From Phaeosaccion multiseriatum (lineage: Eukaryota; Protista; Ochrophyta, other classes), in the NCBI GenBank assembly GCA_965112735.1, contig OZ218956.1, positions 992,001-1,056,000 of the forward strand: a stretch of 64,000 nucleotides of DNA, written 5' to 3'. Position 1 is the first letter of the stretch, and each line of letters starts with the position of its first letter. A model generated the notes under the pieces. That model made no database searches. It was given only the letters and a program-made list of their open reading frames with translations, and was not told where the DNA came from. The position numbers and the translations under genes are program-made. Positions 11,371-54,051 of this stretch are shown here, one piece after another.

Positions 11371-12723
11371 TCAAGGCCGGAGTGGCAGCCAGCGAAGGGG
11401 CGCCAGCGGAATAGTGGGCATCCGCACCATCGCCAGTGCCCCCTCGGGGGCGGCCGGCGCTGTGATGGGCCCCAACGGCGCCGCAAGTCCGAAGCTGGGC
11501 ACCTCGGGCATGGTGTGGCAGGGCTTGACTCTCCGTGACGAGGCTGACGCCGAGGCTGTGGCGGGGCACTCCTTGAAGCAGGGGTCCTGCAGCAGCGGGT
11601 CCTGGTCCACAGCAGGAGCGACTTGGCCGAAACGAAACTCGCAGCTGAGGTCGTCGAAATCAGGCACCATCTCAAGGGGCATTCCCAGGACGTTTTGGAA
11701 GAAGGTCTGCGTGGGGACTTTGCAGAGATTCATGCACGCGCCCTTGCACCGTGAGGCCTCGAGATAGCGGCAGCGCTCCACTTTGACAGTGGACCTCCAC
11801 AGCTCAGGCGGCCGATCTGGCTCGTGAGGGAAGGTGATCTCCTTTTGAATGAGCTGGGAAGGTCCCACCAGCCAAGCGAAGAGCGGGGGGCACATAAAGG
11901 CATTGATCTCCGCCGAGAGCTTGGTGGGAGGGAAGAGCACACGGTACAGGGTGGGGAAGAAGGATGGAAAGATGCTCCCCAGCACCGCCATTACCACTTG
12001 TCGCTGCTCCTCCGGGGGACCCTCCTGCAGCTTCCACGCCAGCTTGACGTAGCTCTCGTACGTGATGGGCTCAGGCAAATCTGCTTCAGTCCCGCCCACC
12101 GCTGCGTTGATGCGCTTTGCAAACAGTTGGATCCATAACTTGTCCGTGAAGCTATCGTTATACACATTGTCCTGATCCGGGGAGGCAAAAGGGTAGGTGG
12201 CCAGCGCTACTGCTGGTGGGTCTTCTATCCTCAGCCGTTTCACCCCCTTCTGGAAATCAGGCGTTGCCTCATCGCTCGAAGCACTTTCTTTCTGCCCGCT
12301 CGTCTGCTCATCGCAGGAGGAATAGTACTGCTGCTGCTGCTCTTCGTAGACAGGAAAGTCCAGACCGAAGCTACTGCTGCAGTCGGTTTCCATCGTCATT
12401 GAACATGACCGTTTCCCTTGGACAGAGCAAACTCTCCCGTCTGACACACCCTTTCGAGAAAAGCTCCCGCTGCTGCTACTGCTGCTGCTGCTGCTACTCC
12501 TGCAGCCAACTGCATTCGTTCTACGACTAGTCATATGTCCACTGCCACCGCCCAGCCCTCCTCTTCCGCGCGGTTGCTGCTGGTGCTGCTGCAGATGCCT
12601 TTGGTGCTGCCCCGACCGCGAAAAGCGGGTCGACAAGGCAGGGACAAAGCTCGCCACCCCACGCAGGCCAAGCCCGGCGCAGCACCAAGCGGCCACCACG
12701 CTGTTCACACGCCCGCGCTTCAT
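11371..12723 (-). CDS. D27: Beta-carotene isomerase D27 family protein (DUF4033), plastid-targeted, intronless
   Basis: FAWLVGP ... VKVERCRYLEASRCKGACMNLCKVPTQTFF..LGMPLEMVPDFDDLSCEFRFGQVAP..DP....PC is the D27 Cys-rich signature. N-terminus is a hydrophobic signal followed by VAS-FVP (ASAFAP-like) and a Ser/Arg-rich transit peptide. First ATG at 12723. Confidence 0.9.
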   Translation of the reverse strand: MKRGRVNSVVAAWCCAGLGLRGVASFVPALSTRFSRSGQHQRHLQQHQQQPRGRGGLGGGSGHMTSRRTNAVGCRSSSSSSSSSSGSFSRKGVSDGRVCSVQGKRSCSMTMETDCSSSFGLDFPVYEEQQQQYYSSCDEQTSGQKESASSDEATPDFQKGVKRLRIEDPPAVALATYPFASPDQDNVYNDSFTDKLWIQLFAKRINAAVGGTEADLPEPITYESYVKLAWKLQEGPPEEQRQVVMAVLGSIFPSFFPTLYRVLFPPTKLSAEINAFMCPPLFAWLVGPSQLIQKEITFPHEPDRPPELWRSTVKVERCRYLEASRCKGACMNLCKVPTQTFFQNVLGMPLEMVPDFDDLSCEFRFGQVAPAVDQDPLLQDPCFKECPATASASASSRRVKPCHTMPEVPSFGLAAPLGPITAPAAPEGALAMVRMPTIPLAPLRWLPLRP

Positions 12724-12912
12724 TCCCACACGCGACGCTGTACCCCTGGCCTTATGATGGTGATTGTGACACAGCCCTGGTCAGAGGTTTCACATTTGCC
12801 CGCCAGCTGTGATTCTTGATGACCAACTTCCCCCGGCTCTTTTTTTTTTTGGTGCTTTCTGGCTTTTTGGTCTCAAAGTGAGTGGAGAACCACACCTAAC
12901 CAGCGGGAAAGG
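12724..12912. promoter_or_regulatory. Probable bidirectional promoter between D27 and the proteasome alpha gene
   Basis: 189-bp gap between divergent ATGs, containing a T-rich tract. Inferred from layout only. Confidence 0.45.
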
Positions 12913-39938: not shown

Positions 39939-40068
39939 CTGTCTAATTAAGTATGGTAATGGTATGAAGGGCACCAGTACCTACTTCTTCGATAGTGAGT
40001 CCCTCTCATCAGTCTACCAGGAGGGACAAGTAATATGAGCGTTGCCAAGCATGGCTGATCGAAAATCC

Positions 40069-40385
40069 TGAGTGAGTGAGTGAGTGAGTGAGTGAGTGAG
40101 TGAGTGAGTGAGTGAGTGAGTGAGTGAGTGAGTGAGCGAGTGAGTGAGCGAGTACGTGAGTGAGTAAGTGAGTGAGTGAGTGAGTGAGTGAGTGAGTGAG
40201 TGCGCGAGTGAGTGAGTGAGTGAGTGAGTGAGTGAGTGAGTGAGTGAGTGAATGAGTGAGTGAGTGAGTAAGTGAGTAAGTGAGTGAATGAGTGAGTGAG
40301 TGAGTGAGTGAGTGAGTGAGTAAGTGAATGAGTGAGTGAGTGAGTGAGTGAGTGAGTAAGTGAGTAAGTGAGTGAATGAGTGAGT
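40069..40385. repeat. ~317-bp (TGAG)n tetranucleotide satellite with TAAG/TGAA variants, intergenic
   Basis: About 79 units read directly. Confidence 0.95.
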
Positions 40386-40634
40386 AGCACCTTGTAAACT
40401 GAAACTGAAAGTGTGTATGTGTGTGGGCGTGAGACGAGTGGGTCACGGAGTGTGAATCGCCGTCGGATCGACGGATCGAGCGTTACAGAAATTTCCCCAT
40501 GGATACTAAAATGGGGAGCAACACGATTGGTGTTGCCACCGGGTGCCACAGACTTTAGAAGGAGGACGGGAACAAGTTTTTTTTTACTTAGAATTCATGT
40601 CATCCACAGACGTTAGAAGGAGGAAGAGAAGAGC

Positions 40635-46294: not shown

Positions 46295-47763
46295 TCATGC
46301 GAGCCTCAGCTGGGCGGGGCTGTTGGTGTTGCTGCTGCGCTGAACCGCCATGCCCACGTCATGGCCTGGAGCCGTCGCAACGAACGGATTCGACTGTTGT
46401 AGCGCAGGGAGCAGAGGCAGCAGTGGGGTGTGTAGGATGATGATGGAGGGTGAGATATAGAAGAGTCCCACTCCCGTGGGGCAATAGACGACACACAGAG
46501 AGAGAGAGTACTGGCACACGCAAGCAAGCTCCCTCAGACCACCACATCCACACCACGCCTGCACACGACACATGGGGTTCACGCGCCAGCCGCTCCAACG
46601 GCGCAGCCTGAAGAACCGCAGTCAAGCACTCAGTAACCTCAATCAATTCCCGGACTCACACCCGCCCCAGCCGCCTCTCACCCGAAGGTACTCGCGCACG
46701 TCCTCGCCGCACTCGAGCAGCAGCCGCCGCATATAGCTCAGCAGGCCTCCGAGCGCCCTGTCCCCGCGGCCCCCGTCCCTCCGCACTTGCGGCTCGCCGA
46801 ACTCCGGCACCACGACCACGTTGTGGGGCATGTGCCGCATCTTGCGTGGTGTGTCATCGACCATGAGTGTGTTGGCGGCGCCGAAGCCGAAGCCTACAGT
46901 ACCTCGGGCTTTCCAGATGCGGTCAATGTCGCGCATGGTGTCCCAGTGGTTCGTTCCCGACGGGTCTGGGCGGTTGTACTCTCGATCGTACACCTCCACA
47001 GCAGCGATTTCCGCCGACTCGATATGCCCTCCTCCACCCTTACCGCCTTTCTTCCTGCCACTGCTCTCCCCAGGTGCCTTTCTGCGCTGGATCTGCTCCA
47101 CCATGTAGCTGACTGCGGGCTGCGCGTTGGATCCCCGCATGCTCGTATACATGGCCACCTCCACTCGGGGGTGCGCAGTCAGCAGCTCCAGCAGCTCCAC
47201 AGCGTGCGGCCGGAAGTGGTAGTGAAAGGTGGCGTGCTCAAAGGCGGCGGGGCAATTGGGTAAGCCTTTCTTATCTCGATAGAGCAAAGTGCCATTCATG
47301 TCAACCAGCACGAGCAGCGGCGACGGGGCAGGCGGTGTAGGCGGGGTTGGGGAGAGGCCTCGGAATTGCCCCAAGTTTGCCAGAGCCTCAGTAGGCTGCA
47401 CGACCGTGGACATACCCTCGCTGACCAAAGAGGCCCAACAATTGGACGAGAAGAGAAAGGAGAGAGGTAGCACAACGGATGGAGTGAGCCAAGAAGAAAA
47501 AACAAGTGGAGACAAGATGCTCAGCCCCTCCCTGAGCTATTCTCTCCAGACCCATTTGAGGGGGGGAAACCTTCCCTCCTCCCGTACCTGCTAATCGTCA
47601 CCTCATGAGGCATGACGCCCTCCGCTGCGGCGAACCTCAGCAGGCAGGTTGCGAGCTCCCACTCGGCGTCCTCCTCCTCCTCCGCTTGCAGCCCCCTTTC
47701 CCCTTCCTCTCTGAGACCAGCCGCAGTACCATGCCTGCTCGCTTCGTGCGGCAGCGGCGACAT
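46295..47763 (-). CDS. FCP1/NIF-type HAD-superfamily phosphatase (DxNGT variant)
   Basis: LVLVDMNGTLLYR, FRPHAVELL, VAMYTSM, RDIDRIW, NTLMVDDTPRK..PHNVVVVPEF, DRALGGLLSYM..DVREYLR. The 3' exon is uncertain (SNPF..* at 46295; further coding-like blocks reach ~45708). The start is also uncertain. Confidence 0.8.
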
Positions 47764-47923: not shown

Positions 47924-49897
47924 ATGAGAGGAAATCAGCCCCCAACGGCGTGGCTACTACTTTTGCTGCTGTTCTCTATATCGAGGAGCTGCCTCAGTGA
48001 GAGAGAGTGCAATTTCATTCAATCTAGAATCACCGTCGTTTATGGTAAGTTGGGTGGCTCGGGACGAAGAAAAGGGGGAAAGGCGTCGGGAGGAGGAGGA
48101 GAGGGAAGGACTGGTTGCGCAAAGATGATGGCTTTGTCTTGTTTAGGGACCGTCCTCACGGAAACTGAGGGAGGCGTTGGTGGGGAGAAAAGGGAGGGTG
48201 GGAAGGAGGGAGGCAAAGGGAGAGAGAAGGGATTGAGAGGTGAGTATCCCTCATTTTTCTCCTCGGCTGGGCACACTTGTGGTGCTGACACCCTTCTATA
48301 CGCTATGGCTCTGACCCACTCCTAGGTGCGCTAGTATGGCCGGACCATGACTGGGCTGCATTAATTGCTGGTCAACTGGGAGACCTGAATGCATCTGGTC
48401 TCGTGGGAGACCCGCGGCTATCTTCCCTCAATGTCGTACTCTCCATCCCTGAATCCCACGGGGACATGACGGAGGCCGATCTCGAGGAGCTGCTCGCCAG
48501 CGCCATATCTTTGGTGGAGCGTGAGTTGCCTTCAGCGTCTATCTTCGCGTTCGGGCATAATGCATTCGAGTTCCCGGCTCTACATTTGTTGTGGTCTATA
48601 GCTCACAGTCTGACTGAAGAAGAAGCGCAGCAAAACTCCATGTTGTACTTCCACTCCAAGGGAATGGTTCACCATCGACATGACCAGGCGGCGCGACTGG
48701 ACATTGAGAAGCAGCTGTCCTCCTTGACAATCAACGCATGGCAGCAAGTGGTGAATTTGATGGAAGAACGCCCGGCCTTGACGAGGGTTGGCCTGTACCC
48801 AACTCAACACGGGTCCATGTGGTTTAATTTCTTCTGGGCCAGAGCTTCCTACATTCAACATCTTCAGGAGCCGCTAAAAACCACTTACCGTTACTATTTT
48901 GAGCACTGGCTAGGGCTCACCGTGGAGTTAGACCCCCCCCTCACCCAAACGGATATTTACGGGGGGTCTTGTGATACATGCCTTGGTCTCATCTGCAGCA
49001 AGAACCATTCGGTACTGGGTCAACTGTCATGGAGGTACGTGCGGAGGTTCGATATGGACCATCCTCGAATCATGCACTAGCTCTAACCTTGTACGGCGAT
49101 CAAGACGGAAATGAAGTGCTTTTATCGTAGGAACGATTATCTGTGAACTTAGTGTACAATAGCCGTGGCTTTGTCTGTCATTGATGCCTCTGCTGTAAGA
49201 GACAACGCGGATACAGTAAAACAGCCTGATGAGTTGTGTGTGTGGTGGTGTGCCTTTTATCTGTGTGTAAGACATGTGTCTCACACTAACTTCCCAAATT
49301 GTCTCAAACTAACTTCCAAAGTTATGTCCCCTTTTTTCCAGACCTATGGATATCCCTGAGCCTGCTCTATGGGGGTCTATGATGGCGGCTGACTGCAGCC
49401 CTATTGATGAATTCCCAAAGCTGTACCAAATGGAAACGACTGTCGAGGCACTGCTCGACTTCGGATTAGGTAAGTGGTGGTACAAGAGTTATTTTCCTCC
49501 ATGGGAATGAAGTTGGTCTGGAGACATCACTGGCCTTGTGGTAGTGGTCCTCTGTGTGTGTGTGGGGGGGGGGGGGGTGGTTTGCGTGTATGTTTCTTAT
49601 TTTGCCTCCTTGCCCTTATGAAGCGTCACTCGGAATGGCCTAACTCCCGTCCGTATTGTATCTCCTCGCCTTCTGACTTGCGCCTCTTCAGACGATGACA
49701 ACGTTTGGCGCATCAACGTGAAGCGACAAGAACGTGACGGAGGCATCGCTATATACCGCGAGACTGCCAACAGTATCTATTATCTTTTTCCTGAGCTGGT
49801 GGAGAGGATGTTGGGCAATGCTGAAAACGCACTGGCGGCAGAGGCTTTGATGAGCTTTCTCACAAGCACACCGCCAAGGGATAATAGTAGCAGTTAG
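47924..49897 (+). CDS. Secreted/luminal glycosyltransferase-like protein of the uncharacterised YFHSKG..NFFWAR..RY..E.WLG family
   Basis: Signal peptide MRGNQPPTAWLLLLLLFSISRSCLS. Exons 47924-48044, 48326-49034, 49342-49469 and 49692-49897 splice in frame. Motifs: NAFEFPALHLLW, MLYFHSKG, WFNFFWARASYIQHLQEP, RYYFEHWLG. Confidence 0.7.
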
Positions 49898-50078
49898 CAC
49901 GTTCTTTCCTGTTCTCAATCCTCCTTCCGCCGGCAGGCTGTTCTCCCTCCGCCGCAGTTCCTTGTACCTCTGGTACGGCGAGTTGACTAGGCTGCACCCA
50001 GAACAGCTCCATACGCAGGACATATCGTAGTGTCTTTACATTTTTCATTATTCTTCTTACTACAACTTCGTATAATAT

Positions 50079-50124
50079 GTATAAACAACTCACTGTAGTT
50101 GTATAAACCACTCACTGTAGTTGT
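50079..50124. repeat. 22-bp tandem duplication at the 3' end of the kinase-methyltransferase gene
   Basis: gtataaacaactcactgtagtt / gtataaaccactcactgtagtt. Confidence 0.9.
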
Positions 50125-52134
50125 TCTGGTCGATGGTTTCGGCGCCGTCGTTGAGAAAGTACCGTCCGCCGTGGACGGCGAGCAACACCCGGCGGGTCGG
50201 GGTGACGGCACCCAGGTCGATTACGGAGGGGAAGATGGACTGTAACACCTGCAAGAGGACAGAGTAGTATGATGAGCGGACATTGTTCGAAAGCGATTGT
50301 ACGACCTAACTCGCTTCCCCAGAAATCAACCTCCCTCCCAATAGTATGATTGAGCTGATGCATGGTGACGCACTCACCCGAACGAACTCGGCGTAGGTGT
50401 AAGGGCTGTCGCCGCGCTCCCAACCCTCCGTGTGTGCGAAGGTCTGAATGGCTGAGTCTGTCGGGTCGATCCACTCGATGAAGAGCGCCTTTCGCGCTTT
50501 TGCTGCTAGCTTCCCGATGGCCTGCGCCAGACTGCCCGAGCCCTCGGAGCAGTTAAAGATCCAGTGCACTAAGGCCAGCGCGACAACCACGTCCGCGCCG
50601 TGCTCCAGCTCCTCCAGCTTGCGGTTATCGACGTGCAGCCTGCCTGTCAGGGGCTCGCCCAAGTGGGAAATGGCGGCTTCGACATTCCTGTGGGCGGACA
50701 AACAGGTGGACGAAACAGAGCAACCGTCGCGTGAGCTGATGGACCTGAAGAGGGGGGATCAGCCGTCCGATAAAGCATGACATTTCTCTCATCCAACCAA
50801 GCCCCCTTCGCGGGTCAGTGTACTTCCGCCCCGCCCCGCCCATTTTCTGTTGCTCACGTACGTGGTATAGGTAGGGTCCATGTCCAACAGTGTGGCCTCG
50901 CGGGCGCCATACCGCAGCGCGCTGAAGCAAAAGTAGCCGTGATTGCCCCCGATGTCCAGCAGCGACAAGCCCCGTACGTGCTTCTTGAGAATGGGATCGA
51001 TGAGAGCGCTTTTGGTCTGGATGCCCTCAGACATGGCCTTTAGTCCAAATTCGAACGCATGTCCCTCGGTGACATCTTCCCCTGCTCCTGCACTGCCCGC
51101 AGTCTCCTCGTTTAAAACAAGCCGTCTTTGTGCCACCTGGAAGGCCTGGTAGCCGTGAAACTCGACGAAAGGCAGCCCGTCGGGTGTTTCAAAGCGTTCA
51201 AACTGCGCCCCCGGTGCATACATGTTGGGTTGTCGGCAGAGTGCACTTCTCACCTCGTTCCCCACCCCCCTGCCCGCTATTGCTCCGCCTGCTCCTGCGC
51301 CTGTCGGCGGTTGCAAAGACTCCAACTGCTCAAGGAGAGCGTCAAGCTCGTCAGTAGACCACTGCCTCGGTATCCACCGGTCGTCTTCCTCCACCATTCT
51401 CTCGTCCACCATTGCGGAGACCACGGGCGCCAGCCACCTCGTGTCCAGCCTCGCAAACACCGTCAACATCGTCTGCAGCACCAAACCGGCGCTGTACACA
51501 TCACTGGGGCCGTGAGGGTGGGCATAGCCGCCGTTCAACACTCTCGGTGGGGGGAACATGGGCGCGACTAAGGGAGACATTGCCCACGTGAAATCCACCA
51601 GGATGAGTCTATGATGCCGCTCCTCCACATTCCCCACCGCTGCTTCTCCCAGTTCCGTTGGGGTGGTCACGATAAAGTTGGCTGCACGAACGTCTCTGTG
51701 AATGATGGACGAGCTCCGAAGCGCTCTGAGTATGCCTAGCATGTCCCTGACGATCCGTCGGTACTCCTCTTGCTCGCGAATGGTACTCACATGCACGACC
51801 AAGTCCACCCCTTCCACGTACTCTGTCAGACACACGGACGCCTTGGACAAGGCGTGGGCGGGGAGCAAGTAGTAGGCTCGCGGGAAGAAGGGAGGGATAC
51901 CACTGCTGCTGCTGCTGCTGCTGCTGCTATCGATCGAGGCACTGTCACTTTCCAGCATGAATAAGTGCACACACTCCACAACGGCAGCGTCGTACCCCTT
52001 CTCGGGCCAGTCAATCCTGCTGGTGCGCGCCTGAAAGGGTATAGACAGAGAGGCGGTACTCGCCATATTAGGAAGGAAATTAGGTGGGGGGGGGAAGAGA
52101 GGGAAGGGACCATACCAAGGCCACTGTCGCCCCC

Positions 52135-52178
<44 letters not shown>

Positions 52179-52518
52179 CGGCACCCACCTTGAAAGACTT
52201 GAACTTGTCGGTGCACGGGGCCTCGCTGTCTTGTAGCTCGACCTGGAAGGTCCGCGACGTACCCCCCACCACTTCTGTCCAATCTGTGTCCTCCAGTGCT
52301 ATTCCACAGCTGGCAAGCTCCGTGGTCAAGGGATTGGTCGTTGGGAGGTAGCTGAGCGCCCTGATGCTGGCCATGTGCGCCCAGGGAAGCACAGCAGCTC
52401 CATCCGCGTCCCCATGCTGATCATCTCCATCTGCCGCTACTGCTGCCGCTACTGCGGCCGCTGCCGGCCCCCGAGAGACGACGCCTCCAAGCAGAAGCAG
52501 GAGAGTCAACAAGAACAT
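50090..52518 (-). CDS. Signal peptide + protein-kinase-like domain + class I SAM-dependent methyltransferase fusion
   Basis: Exons 52518-52189, 52030-50862, 50687-50378 and 50248-~50090. Signal MFLLTLLLLLGGVVSRG. Kinase: GGTSRTF, TEYVEG, IIHRDVRAANF, LVDFTWA, SDVYSAG. MTase: LLDIGGNHGYF, LLDMD, ADVVVALALVHWIF, LFIEWIDPTD. The 3' end is uncertain. Confidence 0.85.
52139..52178. repeat. (GA)n microsatellite, intronic
   Basis: gagagaga... run. Confidence 0.9.
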
Positions 52519-52743
52519 GCCCTGCCACTCTGTGGTGAGCGTTATGAAAGAGAATGGAATGAGCCGGTGAGTAGATCTTATTGACTTAATAGGAATCACC
52601 GGTGAGATTGAATACGCACATTGGTGATACAAGTTTACTCACAACTTATTTTATATCATTATTTACCTCACCCCCTCTATCCCCTCGTCCCCTCATAATG
52701 TCCCCCTCTCCGTACCGTCTAATAGTCCTTTAAAAGTGTGCTG
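52519..52743. promoter_or_regulatory. Probable bidirectional promoter shared by the kinase-methyltransferase and GT-B genes
   Basis: 225-bp AT-richer gap between divergent ATGs. Confidence 0.45.
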
Positions 52744-54051
52744 ATGCGTGCGATTAGCCCCGTCGTGATGCTAATCATAACCTTTCCTTTTTCTGAAGTG
52801 GTATCTGCCTTGTCGACGCCTTCGACAACAGAGATGGAGGAGGAGCAGCCGAGTCCTAAGCAGCTTCTCGAAGAGTGGTATGGGGAGGAGGGGGAGAATA
52901 AGGAGCGGCGGGACTTGGAATGCGGGCAGAGTGGGAAAGAGGAGCAGCAGCTGCCGGGAGGCTTGGGCGCGAACCTGCCAGGAGGCTTCGAGAGTGTTTA
53001 CATCCTCTTTAAAGGCAGCCTCTTTGAGGAAACTTCCTACGGGATCCAAGAGCTGCTTGCCACAGAAGGTGTCGTGGCGTACGTTTCCAGCATGACCGAA
53101 GACTACGTATGGGAAGCGGGCATGCTAGACCCGTCCGCACTCTTTATACTCCTGGGTTGGATTCATGACTTTCCAGTAAAGCCGCTACGTTTCAAGTATG
53201 TCCTGATTCAGATGGAGCAAACGCAGAGCAATTGGTTCATTCAAGCGCCCTACCAAAAGGCAATGAGAGACGCGCTTGCCATTTGGGACTACAGCCCCGT
53301 GGCAGTCCAGCTGGAGCGGGAAGCGGGCCTCTATGCGTTCGAGATTGGAATGCCCATAGACTCAGCGTACCTCAGTGTTCCATACGCGTTCACTGATGTG
53401 TCCAAACCAGTGCCTGATGAGCTTCGGGTGATCGATGTGCTGTGGTATGGAGTAAATACCGAGCGACGGGAGGAGTTCTTCCAGCTCATGCAGGCGACTT
53501 GCAAAGAGCACGGGTATGGTACAGTGTATAGGCACGTCAACCTTTATGGCTCAGGGAGGGACGAAGTTGTTACTTTGAGCAAGGTCGTGCTGAACATTCA
53601 CGCTTTCTGTGACTACTTGCAACTCGAGGTCCACCGGCTTCACTACCTCCTCTCGATGGGCAAGGTAGTGGTCAGCGAGAGAGGGGATGACCCCGAGCTA
53701 GAGAAGCTGTACGAGGGAGCCGTCGTCTTTTCTGATCTGGAGGACATGCCCCGAATCGCTGGGGACCTCATTCAAAACTCAACATGGCGATGGGAGATTG
53801 AAGGAAAGGCGAGGGCCTTGGCGGAGAAGCTTCAAGGCGAGGGCAGTACCCTGGTGCAGGCGTGGAGGAGCACGATGGAGCTGGCGGGATACGTAGATGA
53901 GCACGGAGTCTTTCCCAACGGCCGAGCCGCTCAGGGGCAGCAAGAGAGTGAGGAAGATTCAAGAATAGTCGTTCTACCGTCGCTGGAGCTCAAGAGGGAA
54001 GACTTTACGCATCTGTCGCAGCTGAAACAGAGACTGACAAGTGGACACTGA
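52744..54051 (+). CDS. Intronless GT-B (family 1/Glyco_trans_1_2-like) glycosyltransferase with signal peptide
   Basis: YVLIQMEQ, AIWDYSP, IDVLWYGVNTERR, LYGSGRDEVVTLSKVVLNIH, LEVHRLHYLLSMGKVVVSERGDD, YEGAVVF. Hydrophobic N-terminus MRAISPVVMLIITFPFSEVVSA. Confidence 0.8.
   Translation: MRAISPVVMLIITFPFSEVVSALSTPSTTEMEEEQPSPKQLLEEWYGEEGENKERRDLECGQSGKEEQQLPGGLGANLPGGFESVYILFKGSLFEETSYGIQELLATEGVVAYVSSMTEDYVWEAGMLDPSALFILLGWIHDFPVKPLRFKYVLIQMEQTQSNWFIQAPYQKAMRDALAIWDYSPVAVQLEREAGLYAFEIGMPIDSAYLSVPYAFTDVSKPVPDELRVIDVLWYGVNTERREEFFQLMQATCKEHGYGTVYRHVNLYGSGRDEVVTLSKVVLNIHAFCDYLQLEVHRLHYLLSMGKVVVSERGDDPELEKLYEGAVVFSDLEDMPRIAGDLIQNSTWRWEIEGKARALAEKLQGEGSTLVQAWRSTMELAGYVDEHGVFPNGRAAQGQQESEEDSRIVVLPSLELKREDFTHLSQLKQRLTSGH

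Follow-up and report, generated by a model that had tools for sequence, protein, structure and literature searches.

A stretch of 64,000 nucleotides of the ochrophyte alga Phaeosaccion multiseriatum (contig OZ218956.1, positions 992,001 to 1,056,000; hereafter the window, in whose own numbering all positions are given) was analysed for a gene whose product joins a kinase to a methyltransferase (MTase). The gene lies on the minus strand at 52518-50090. From the sequence and a list of its open reading frames (ORFs) it has four exons and three GT-AG introns, with the start ATG at 52518-52516 and the stop TGA at 50092-50090; the limits of 50090-52518 proposed in an earlier reading of this DNA (the original prediction) coincide exactly with these two codons. 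The product contains a kinase resembling the eukaryotic protein kinases (ePKs) and a class I S-adenosylmethionine (SAM) MTase in one polypeptide. The original prediction took it for a reversed, luminal relative of WbdD, the enzyme that caps an Escherichia coli O-antigen polysaccharide. The features of the gene, all on the minus strand, are as follows.

52518-52189: exon 1, 110 codons, with the ATG, signal-like segment, spacer, Gly loop and beta3-type Lys; it carries the conserved block LPW..A..YLPTTNP..C and a degenerate Gly loop, VGGTSRTF
About 52468-52518: hydrophobic signal-like segment of exon 1
52191-52189: beta3-type Lys, the final codon of exon 1
52188-52031: intron 1, 158 nt, GTGGGT..TTTCAG; the reading frame differs between the ORFs on either side
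52138-52178: (AG)n/(CT)n microsatellite within intron 1 (Tandem Repeats Finder)
52030-50862: exon 2, the remaining kinase (alphaC Glu in VVEC, hinge LTEYVEG, DVYSAG), the linker, MTase motif I and the acidic LLDMD
51700-51677: HRDVRAAN, exon 2
51595-51584: DFTW, exon 2, within LVDFTW, the Asp at 51595-51593
51229-51215: linker motif C..PNMYA, exon 2
51154-51140: GYQAF, also in the linker, exon 2
50956-50930: MTase motif I, DIGGNHGYF (in LLDIGGNHGYF), exon 2, the Asp at 50956-50954
50884-50876: acidic LLDMD, exon 2
50861-50688: intron 2, 174 nt, GTACGT..CCACAG, phase 2
50687-50378: exon 3, the MTase core, with LGEP, motif IV, NCSEGSGSLA, FIEWIDPTDSAI and SPYTYAEF
50593-50561: motif IV, DVVVALALVHW, exon 3; its His is aligned to H132 of WbdD
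50377-50249: intron 3, 129 nt, GTGAGT..TTGCAG
50248-50090: exon 4, 52 codons and the TGA, the C-terminus of the MTase
50203-50189: VTPTRR, exon 4; its Arg is aligned to R203 of WbdD via a bacterial family described below

The encoded protein has a hydrophobic N-terminus, MFLLTLLLLLGGVV (Kyte-Doolittle 10-residue maximum 3.06), followed by an Ala/Val-rich acidic spacer (DGDDQHGDAD). The kinase scores 34.0 bits against the Pfam Pkinase model (PF00069; cut-off 31.7), and its PDB sequence matches are ePKs. The catalytic Lys and Glu, HRDVRAAN and the Asp of DFT are all kept, the Gly loop is degenerate, and no APE motif is found in the kinase sequence between DFT and DVYSAG. Matches of the MTase to Pfam families are all below the cut-offs and those to NCBIfam far below (TIGR04290, CmoB, MAD6). 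The features of a class I SAM MTase are nonetheless present: the motif I loop, an acidic residue after beta2, and motif IV. The kinase features of the original prediction (HRDxxxxN, the DFTW variant, no APE) can all be read in the translation, as can its SAM-binding MTase (LLDIGGNHGYF, LLDMD, VVVALALVHW) and its hydrophobic signal. The protein ends about 50 residues past the last MTase strand, with no C-terminal coiled coil of the WbdD type.

Four repeats lie in or beside the gene (Tandem Repeats Finder): (AG)n, a (CTG)n underlying a poly-Ser stretch, a 12-nt repeat underlying the Ala/Val spacer, and a 22-nt tandem duplication. The last of these (50078-50124, 2.1 copies, 96% identical) extends across the 3' end of the coding region, with the TGA in its second copy. 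This copy is read in a shifted frame, giving a C-terminus a few residues shorter than in the relatives P0003 and P0010, whose terminal Cys-containing tail the window protein does not have.

Relatives with the same arrangement of domains were found in other sequences (proteins are numbered P and their loci L). A full HMMER scan with exon 2 and P0001 gave full-length relatives of 638-664 residues (P0002, P0003, P0004 and also P0155), and a word search with the family alignment gave nine proteins in JGI, ENA and Logan, each annotated at most as "hypothetical protein". In this family a signal-like segment precedes an ePK-like kinase, which a linker bearing CxxPNx[FY]A and GYQxF connects to a class I SAM MTase. 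The family is small, and all its known sequences come from contigs of eukaryote-like character. A metagenome scan with alignment A10 gave distant bacterial-type matches only and no new eukaryotic locus, and there is no paralogue of the gene within the window. A scan of viral sequences with A10 gave one weak match, a 413-aa ORF of an IMG/VR contig (L090 4371-6283), which has a weak APH-like N-terminus and a family-related MTase (27% identity) and is directly followed by a GT8 glycosyltransferase gene.

In P0003 (L002:168-2087) and P0155 (L003:8001-9995) the two domains are encoded by one ORF without interruption; their contigs, 17 and 28 kb long, also contain eukaryote-type genes such as SNF2 and ELO. 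Since these single-ORF relatives have the same layout, the fusion is real, and the placing of both domains in one gene is borne out. A confident AlphaFold2 model of P0003 contains both domains (mean predicted local distance difference test score, pLDDT, 82.3; predicted template modelling score, pTM, 0.85), with a single long helix (residues 302-323), which lies in the interdomain linker.

When the window exons were compared with the relatives one by one, all four aligned in order to single-ORF relatives. Exon 2 matches P0001 at E 2e-30 with 97% coverage, and P0001 reads through the site of intron 2; P0001 was the only relative given by the word search with this exon, in which low-complexity words crowded the candidates. 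Exons 1 and 4 were aligned to the family with hhalign, exon 1 to its N-terminus at a probability of 90.5 (E 1.4e-6) and exon 4 at 91.7. For exon 2, P0003 searched against the window with tblastn also gives E values of 7e-62 and 8e-24. Intron 2 interrupts the MTase domain after motif II and before the next helix, and its phase-2 splice gives the exact family spacing from DMDxxYT to LGxP, which is identical in P0001, P0003 and others. An intron lies in the relative locus L001 near the place equivalent to intron 3.

An artefact, whether from two genes side by side, a pseudogene or contaminating bacterial DNA, is therefore barely credible. In its favour, the MTase is interrupted twice and a tandem duplication sets the stop. 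However, canonical GT-AG introns restore the exact family spacing, the relatives are single-ORF, the catalytic motifs are all intact, the flanking genes are eukaryotic and of the same composition, and no bacterial member was found with the kinase first (by the order census given below) or with a signal segment (among eight checked). Separate genes were rejected on the single-ORF relatives, the order of the exons and the restored spacing; read-through of intron 2 was rejected on a stop at 50789, and bacterial contamination was rejected too. A pseudogene was set aside, as the exons align in order and the split codon restores the family spacing.

Hydrophobic N-termini are found in the window protein and in P0004, P0155, P0008, P0016, P0002, P0003 and P0115 (Kyte-Doolittle 10-residue maxima of 1.5-3.2). 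To judge by this hydrophobicity they resemble signal peptides, and entry into the secretory pathway is probable. The hydrophobic segment might instead be the first half of a bipartite plastid-targeting signal, which would place the enzyme in the plastid or periplastid space. The host does seem to have a secondary plastid. A gene at 11371-12729 (minus strand) encodes a D27-like beta-carotene isomerase (Pfam D27-like_C, E 3.9e-31) with a signal-like N-terminus followed by AS|FVP, and this N-terminus suggests a secondary plastid of the red type. By targeting rules, however, the kinase-MTase protein lacks an aromatic residue such as Phe in the region where cleavage is predicted, and a transit peptide does not fit because the stretch after the signal is acidic (the next 30 residues include DGDDQHGDAD). 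Plastid targeting is therefore very unlikely.

A much larger bacterial family has the same two modules in the opposite order. In a census of domain order, made with four local hidden Markov models on the proteins of the HMMER scan, 80 proteins have the MTase before the kinase (MT>KIN), 16 have the kinase first (KIN>MT), 54 have the MTase only and 5 the kinase only. All 16 eukaryote-type members are KIN>MT, and the 80 MT>KIN proteins are bacterial. The latter are of 450-700 residues; by Pfam an MTase comes before a Pkinase domain, after which a coiled coil or TPR repeats are frequent. The family is represented in Chloroflexota, Planctomycetota, Verrucomicrobiota, Acidobacteriota, Ignavibacteriota and Cyanobacteria. 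Eight of eight bacterial members checked have no N-terminal hydrophobic segment, the PNxxA motif standing directly at the start. Giant ORFs of 2300-2700 residues with the MTase-kinase module at the N-terminus are found in metagenome-assembled genomes of Kapaibacteriales and Hyphomicrobiales (L029 7938-14822, L030 7941-16013, L056 7959-15956; matches such as P0032 and P0080).

In an alignment and consensus of 30 bacterial members (A7; for example P0021 and P0025), the MTase module is shared entire with the eukaryotic family, including a PNxxA and GYQxF extension that ordinary MTases lack. Also in common are LDxGxNxGFF, ADVVxALALIHW, LIxEWIxPxDxAI, PYxxxxF and SPTRxLY in the MTase and HRDIxxxN, LIDF[GT]WA and DxYSxG in the kinase. 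By hhalign, the eukaryotic MTase aligns to the bacterial family with a probability of 100 (E 6.5e-62, 231 columns, 33% identity) and the eukaryotic kinase with one of 99.7 (E 1.8e-26).

Some of the bacterial genes lie in loci for polysaccharide export. The cluster around P0021 contains an ABC-2 permease, an ABC ATPase with the carbohydrate-binding domain Wzt_C, sugar-nucleotide enzymes and six glycosyltransferase genes, and an ABC-2 permease adjoins P0026. In a survey of GTDB loci, with one genome per species, Wzm and Wzt were found within 8 kb in 6 of the 29 loci with full-length matches and in none of the 24 control loci with kinase-only matches; they are mostly directly upstream. Other neighbours include GT2, MptE-like proteins and further MTases. 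A role as glycan terminator is, from this gene context, well supported for part of the bacterial family. No published study of any member was found in a literature search.

It is through this family that the algal protein can be connected with WbdD, which stops elongation of its polysaccharide by adding first a phosphate and then a methyl group to the sugar at the non-reducing end. The reference used was WbdD of E. coli HS (L006:17970-20093, minus strand, between wzt and wbdA). The bacterial profile aligns to it by hhalign with a probability of 99 (E 8.2e-18) over 306 colinear columns covering both domains, and in the same alignment SPxxRxxY falls on WbdD R203. The transitive link from the eukaryotic family to WbdD, by way of the bacterial family (E 6.5e-62 and 1.8e-26, then 8.2e-18), is strong. 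HRDVRAAN aligns with HDDVRPWN of WbdD by this route. Methylation of the phosphate by WbdD requires H132, H133, R203 and Y16 (PMC3482155). H132 aligns with the invariant His of IHW, and R203 with the Arg of SPTRR through two hhalign alignments. The kinship and the reversed order in the description "reversed, luminal WbdD-like" are thus upheld, by the hhalign alignments and by the census (16 against 80) respectively, and secretory targeting is probable from the N-terminal segments.

A quick IQ-TREE analysis, made on the MTase modules, unites all 17 eukaryote-type rows in a single clade with a Shimodaira-Hasegawa-like approximate likelihood-ratio support of 96; exon 3 of the window gene is among them, as are the divergent P0112, P0115, P0009 and P0016. 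The rows nearest to window exon 3 are P0001, P0002 and P0005. The clade falls among the bacterial rows when the tree is rooted on WbdD. Taken with the domain orders, the simplest history would be a single transfer from bacteria, a permutation of the order and the gain of a signal peptide: an alga would have acquired a bacterial WbdD-like gene once, its domains would have changed places, for which a tandem duplication and then the loss of the two ends is the simplest route, and the added signal would have redirected the product to the endoplasmic reticulum (ER) or Golgi.

It is possible to propose a function on this basis. With luminal ATP, the kinase would place a phosphate on one hydroxyl of the sugar that ends a glycan or a polysaccharide of the wall, and the MTase beside it would then methylate this phosphate with SAM, through the His of IHW, the Arg of SPTRR and the Tyr or Phe of PNxYA. 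The resulting methyl-phosphate cap would block further extension or trimming. Luminal SAM-using methyltransferases and the import of SAM into the Golgi are known from plants. There is precedent also for luminal glycan kinases, in POMK and Fam20B (PMC5142810, PMC5865150). The full proposal, of a bifunctional WbdD-type enzyme of the secretory pathway that makes a methyl-phosphate cap, is given a probability of about 0.5. The part of it that concerns homology and architecture is, from the alignments, very probably correct. A wider reading, in which algae run a bacterial-style cap chemistry in their secretory pathway with a horizontally acquired, domain-permuted relative of WbdD, is put forward tentatively; either a protein glycan or a polysaccharide of the wall would have its terminal sugar phosphorylated and then methylated, serving to control chain length or to protect against glycosidases.

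Several observations weigh against the proposal. E. coli WbdD itself appears to be only a distant relative of the eukaryotic protein. Compared directly by hhalign, the eukaryotic MTase aligns to it with a probability of 68 (E 4.9e-5), with IHW over H132-H133, and the kinase with one of 48 (E 1.8e-4) over 36 columns around the catalytic loop. The residue equivalent to H133 is Trp. One MAFFT alignment (A8) pairs Y16 with the aromatic position of PNx[Y/F]A, where the window protein has Tyr; this assignment is tentative. The coiled coil that in WbdD serves as ruler and as tether to the membrane and WbdA is missing from the window protein. Of the bacterial loci, no more than about one in five has wzm and wzt nearby. 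The MTase tree was made by a quick method and has long branches and an uncertain root. Methyl-phosphate on algal glycans was not found to be reported in the searchable literature. The methyl-phosphomannose of Dictyostelium, offered in the original prediction as a parallel, proved a weak one, as the GlcNAc-1-phosphate transferase gpt1, and not a kinase, is described as the source of the glycan phosphate there (PMC11795075).

Structure comparison adds to these points in that the top 50 Foldseek matches of the P0003 model do not include WbdD and are generic class I MTases (ChlM, CmoB, ToxA/XrdM, MePCE) and kinases (PknG). This result is uninformative about the WbdD fold because the query has two domains and a permuted order. 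Sequence profiles gave a similar picture: WbdD was not among the PDB matches of the MTase-only profile at E<=1, P0021 alone missed it too, and a PDB search with the profile of the whole family was swamped by protein kinases.

Such matches bear on a different explanation, that the gene encodes a secreted or luminal protein kinase for Ser, Thr or Tyr, like Fam20C or VLK, fused to an MTase that acts on proteins or small molecules and is unrelated to phosphate. The kinase is indeed ePK-like, with best PDB matches to ULK1, RAF, PknB and StkP, and the subdomain IX-like DxYSxG is kept. The bacterial kinase module scores at least as well against Hanks-type protein kinases as against WbdD (70 bits to StkP, 58 to WbdD), a further point against the proposed cap, and the MTase profile weakly matches PRMT1 (E 1.7e-4). 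However, the two modules occur together in about 100 proteins, in either order, and the bacterial family is aligned to WbdD across both domains and found in polysaccharide export clusters. Furthermore, the absence of APE and the short activation segment are as in WbdD, and the residues at the phosphate-methylating H132 and R203 are conserved. A protein kinase of this kind is considered rather unlikely.

Alternatively, the enzyme may be a glycan O-methyltransferase that methylates a sugar hydroxyl or a phosphate placed by another enzyme, the kinase-like half serving mainly for binding or as a scaffold. The MTase is the best-conserved part of the family (alignments A4 and A10), and E. coli O8 WbdD adds a methyl group without phosphate (PMC3482155). 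The kinase motifs are degenerate in P0001 (L001 8001-9737) and in P0005/P0153, with HGS or HGN for HRD, while the MTase motifs are intact; P0005/P0153 have also lost the Asp of DFG (GFTWA for DFTWA). Kinase catalysis is therefore predicted not to be universal in the family, which counts against the cap proposal as well, and these branches may be pseudokinase paralogues. The Lys, Glu, HRDxxxxN and DFT are nevertheless retained in the window protein and most members, which argues for a working kinase in the window copy, and the His and Arg at the positions of WbdD H132 and R203 are kept. An MTase with an idle kinase half therefore seems improbable, and the cap-forming bifunctional enzyme is preferred to it.

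The gene stands among eukaryotic genes in a window of about 59% GC with short introns. Its divergent neighbour is the following.

52744-54051, plus strand: putative glycosyltransferase of the GT4/Glyco_trans_1_2 type, 435 aa from the first ATG, with a hydrophobic N-terminus

The original prediction placed a GT-B gene head-to-head with the kinase-MTase gene. The divergent position is as described, and the GT-B identity is partly borne out, by weak homologues with Pfam Glyco_trans_1_2 and by a low-confidence model (pLDDT 53) that matches only GT-B glycosyltransferases (PimA, BshA, MshA, WaaG, EXTL3). The ORF (52738-54051) has no PDB sequence match. The pairing of the two genes is suggestive in position only. 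No homologue of the neighbour was found in the relatives' loci L001-L003 and L007, a weak test in which two of the genes are at contig ends, and the same weak test found none of the 48403-49080 ORF or the NIF phosphatase (below) beside a family gene. There is no ABC exporter near the window gene, its neighbours being the GT-B-like gene and unrelated genes.

Other features of the region can be noted. A 225-aa ORF at 48403-49080 (plus strand) is convergent with the kinase-MTase gene and contains the motifs YFHSKG and WFNFFWARASY; it has no Pfam or NCBIfam match and four chance-level PDB matches (E 0.12-4). The gene at 46643-47515 (minus strand) has an NLI-interacting-factor-like (CTD-type) phosphatase domain (Pfam NIF, E 1.5e-9). 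Long minus-strand ORFs of THSL/THSLTHSL units at 39947-40549 are a tandem repeat tract with no evident gene. In a relative's locus, an ORF just downstream of the P0001 gene (L001 10973-11632, plus strand) has motifs that by eye may be sulfotransferase-like (HYHKSGH, VRDPYDMVVS).

WbdD is the textbook case of control of polysaccharide length by a chemical cap and, to our knowledge, is known only from bacteria. If the proposal is true, the cap mechanism would extend to the ER, Golgi or cell wall of algae. The algal protein would be the first eukaryotic kinase/methyltransferase forming a glycan methyl-phosphate, and a new family would join the short list of luminal glycan kinases. The proposal predicts an algal glycan modification that can be searched for, a methyl-phosphate of +94 Da. 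The family would also be a clean case of permutation of domain order following transfer from a bacterium to a eukaryote, and it points to a large uncharacterised family of bacterial MTase-kinases in many phyla, partly in ABC-transporter polysaccharide loci. No name for the kinase-MTase family was found in any source.

The algal protein differs in several ways from the systems it resembles. MePCE/Bin3, the MTase of the 7SK snRNA gamma-phosphate, is also a class I enzyme that methylates a phosphate (profile E 0.12; target-normalised TM-score 0.59 to 6dcc in Foldseek). However, its substrate is RNA, it is nuclear and lacks a kinase partner, and many other class I MTases show as much similarity. 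POMK (SGK196) and Fam20B are sugar kinases of the kinase fold in the ER/Golgi lumen (PMC5142810, PMC5865150), so that the likeness is one of place and substrate class only; they have no fused MTase and a different origin, and are not among the listed PDB matches of the family. The bacterial MT>KIN family has DFG and the opposite order, and its members are often extended, by a coiled coil at the C-terminus, by TPR repeats or to great length.

The closest comparison is with E. coli O9a/O9 WbdD (PDB 4AZS, 4AZW, 4UW0), in which, likewise, a class I SAM MTase is joined to an ePK-like kinase whose activation segment is short. In WbdD the MTase precedes the kinase, whereas in the window protein the kinase precedes the MTase. 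WbdD is cytoplasmic and held at the membrane, with HDD and DFG, while the window protein has an N-terminal signal-like segment, HRD and DFT. WbdD is encoded with Wzm/Wzt and the polymerising glycosyltransferases; the window gene is eukaryotic and intron-bearing, without the ABC exporter. With a different order, no coiled coil and a different genomic context, the window protein is not a strict member of the WbdD family. It is, as far as its sequence can be read, a permuted eukaryotic offshoot of a WbdD-like MTase-kinase superfamily.

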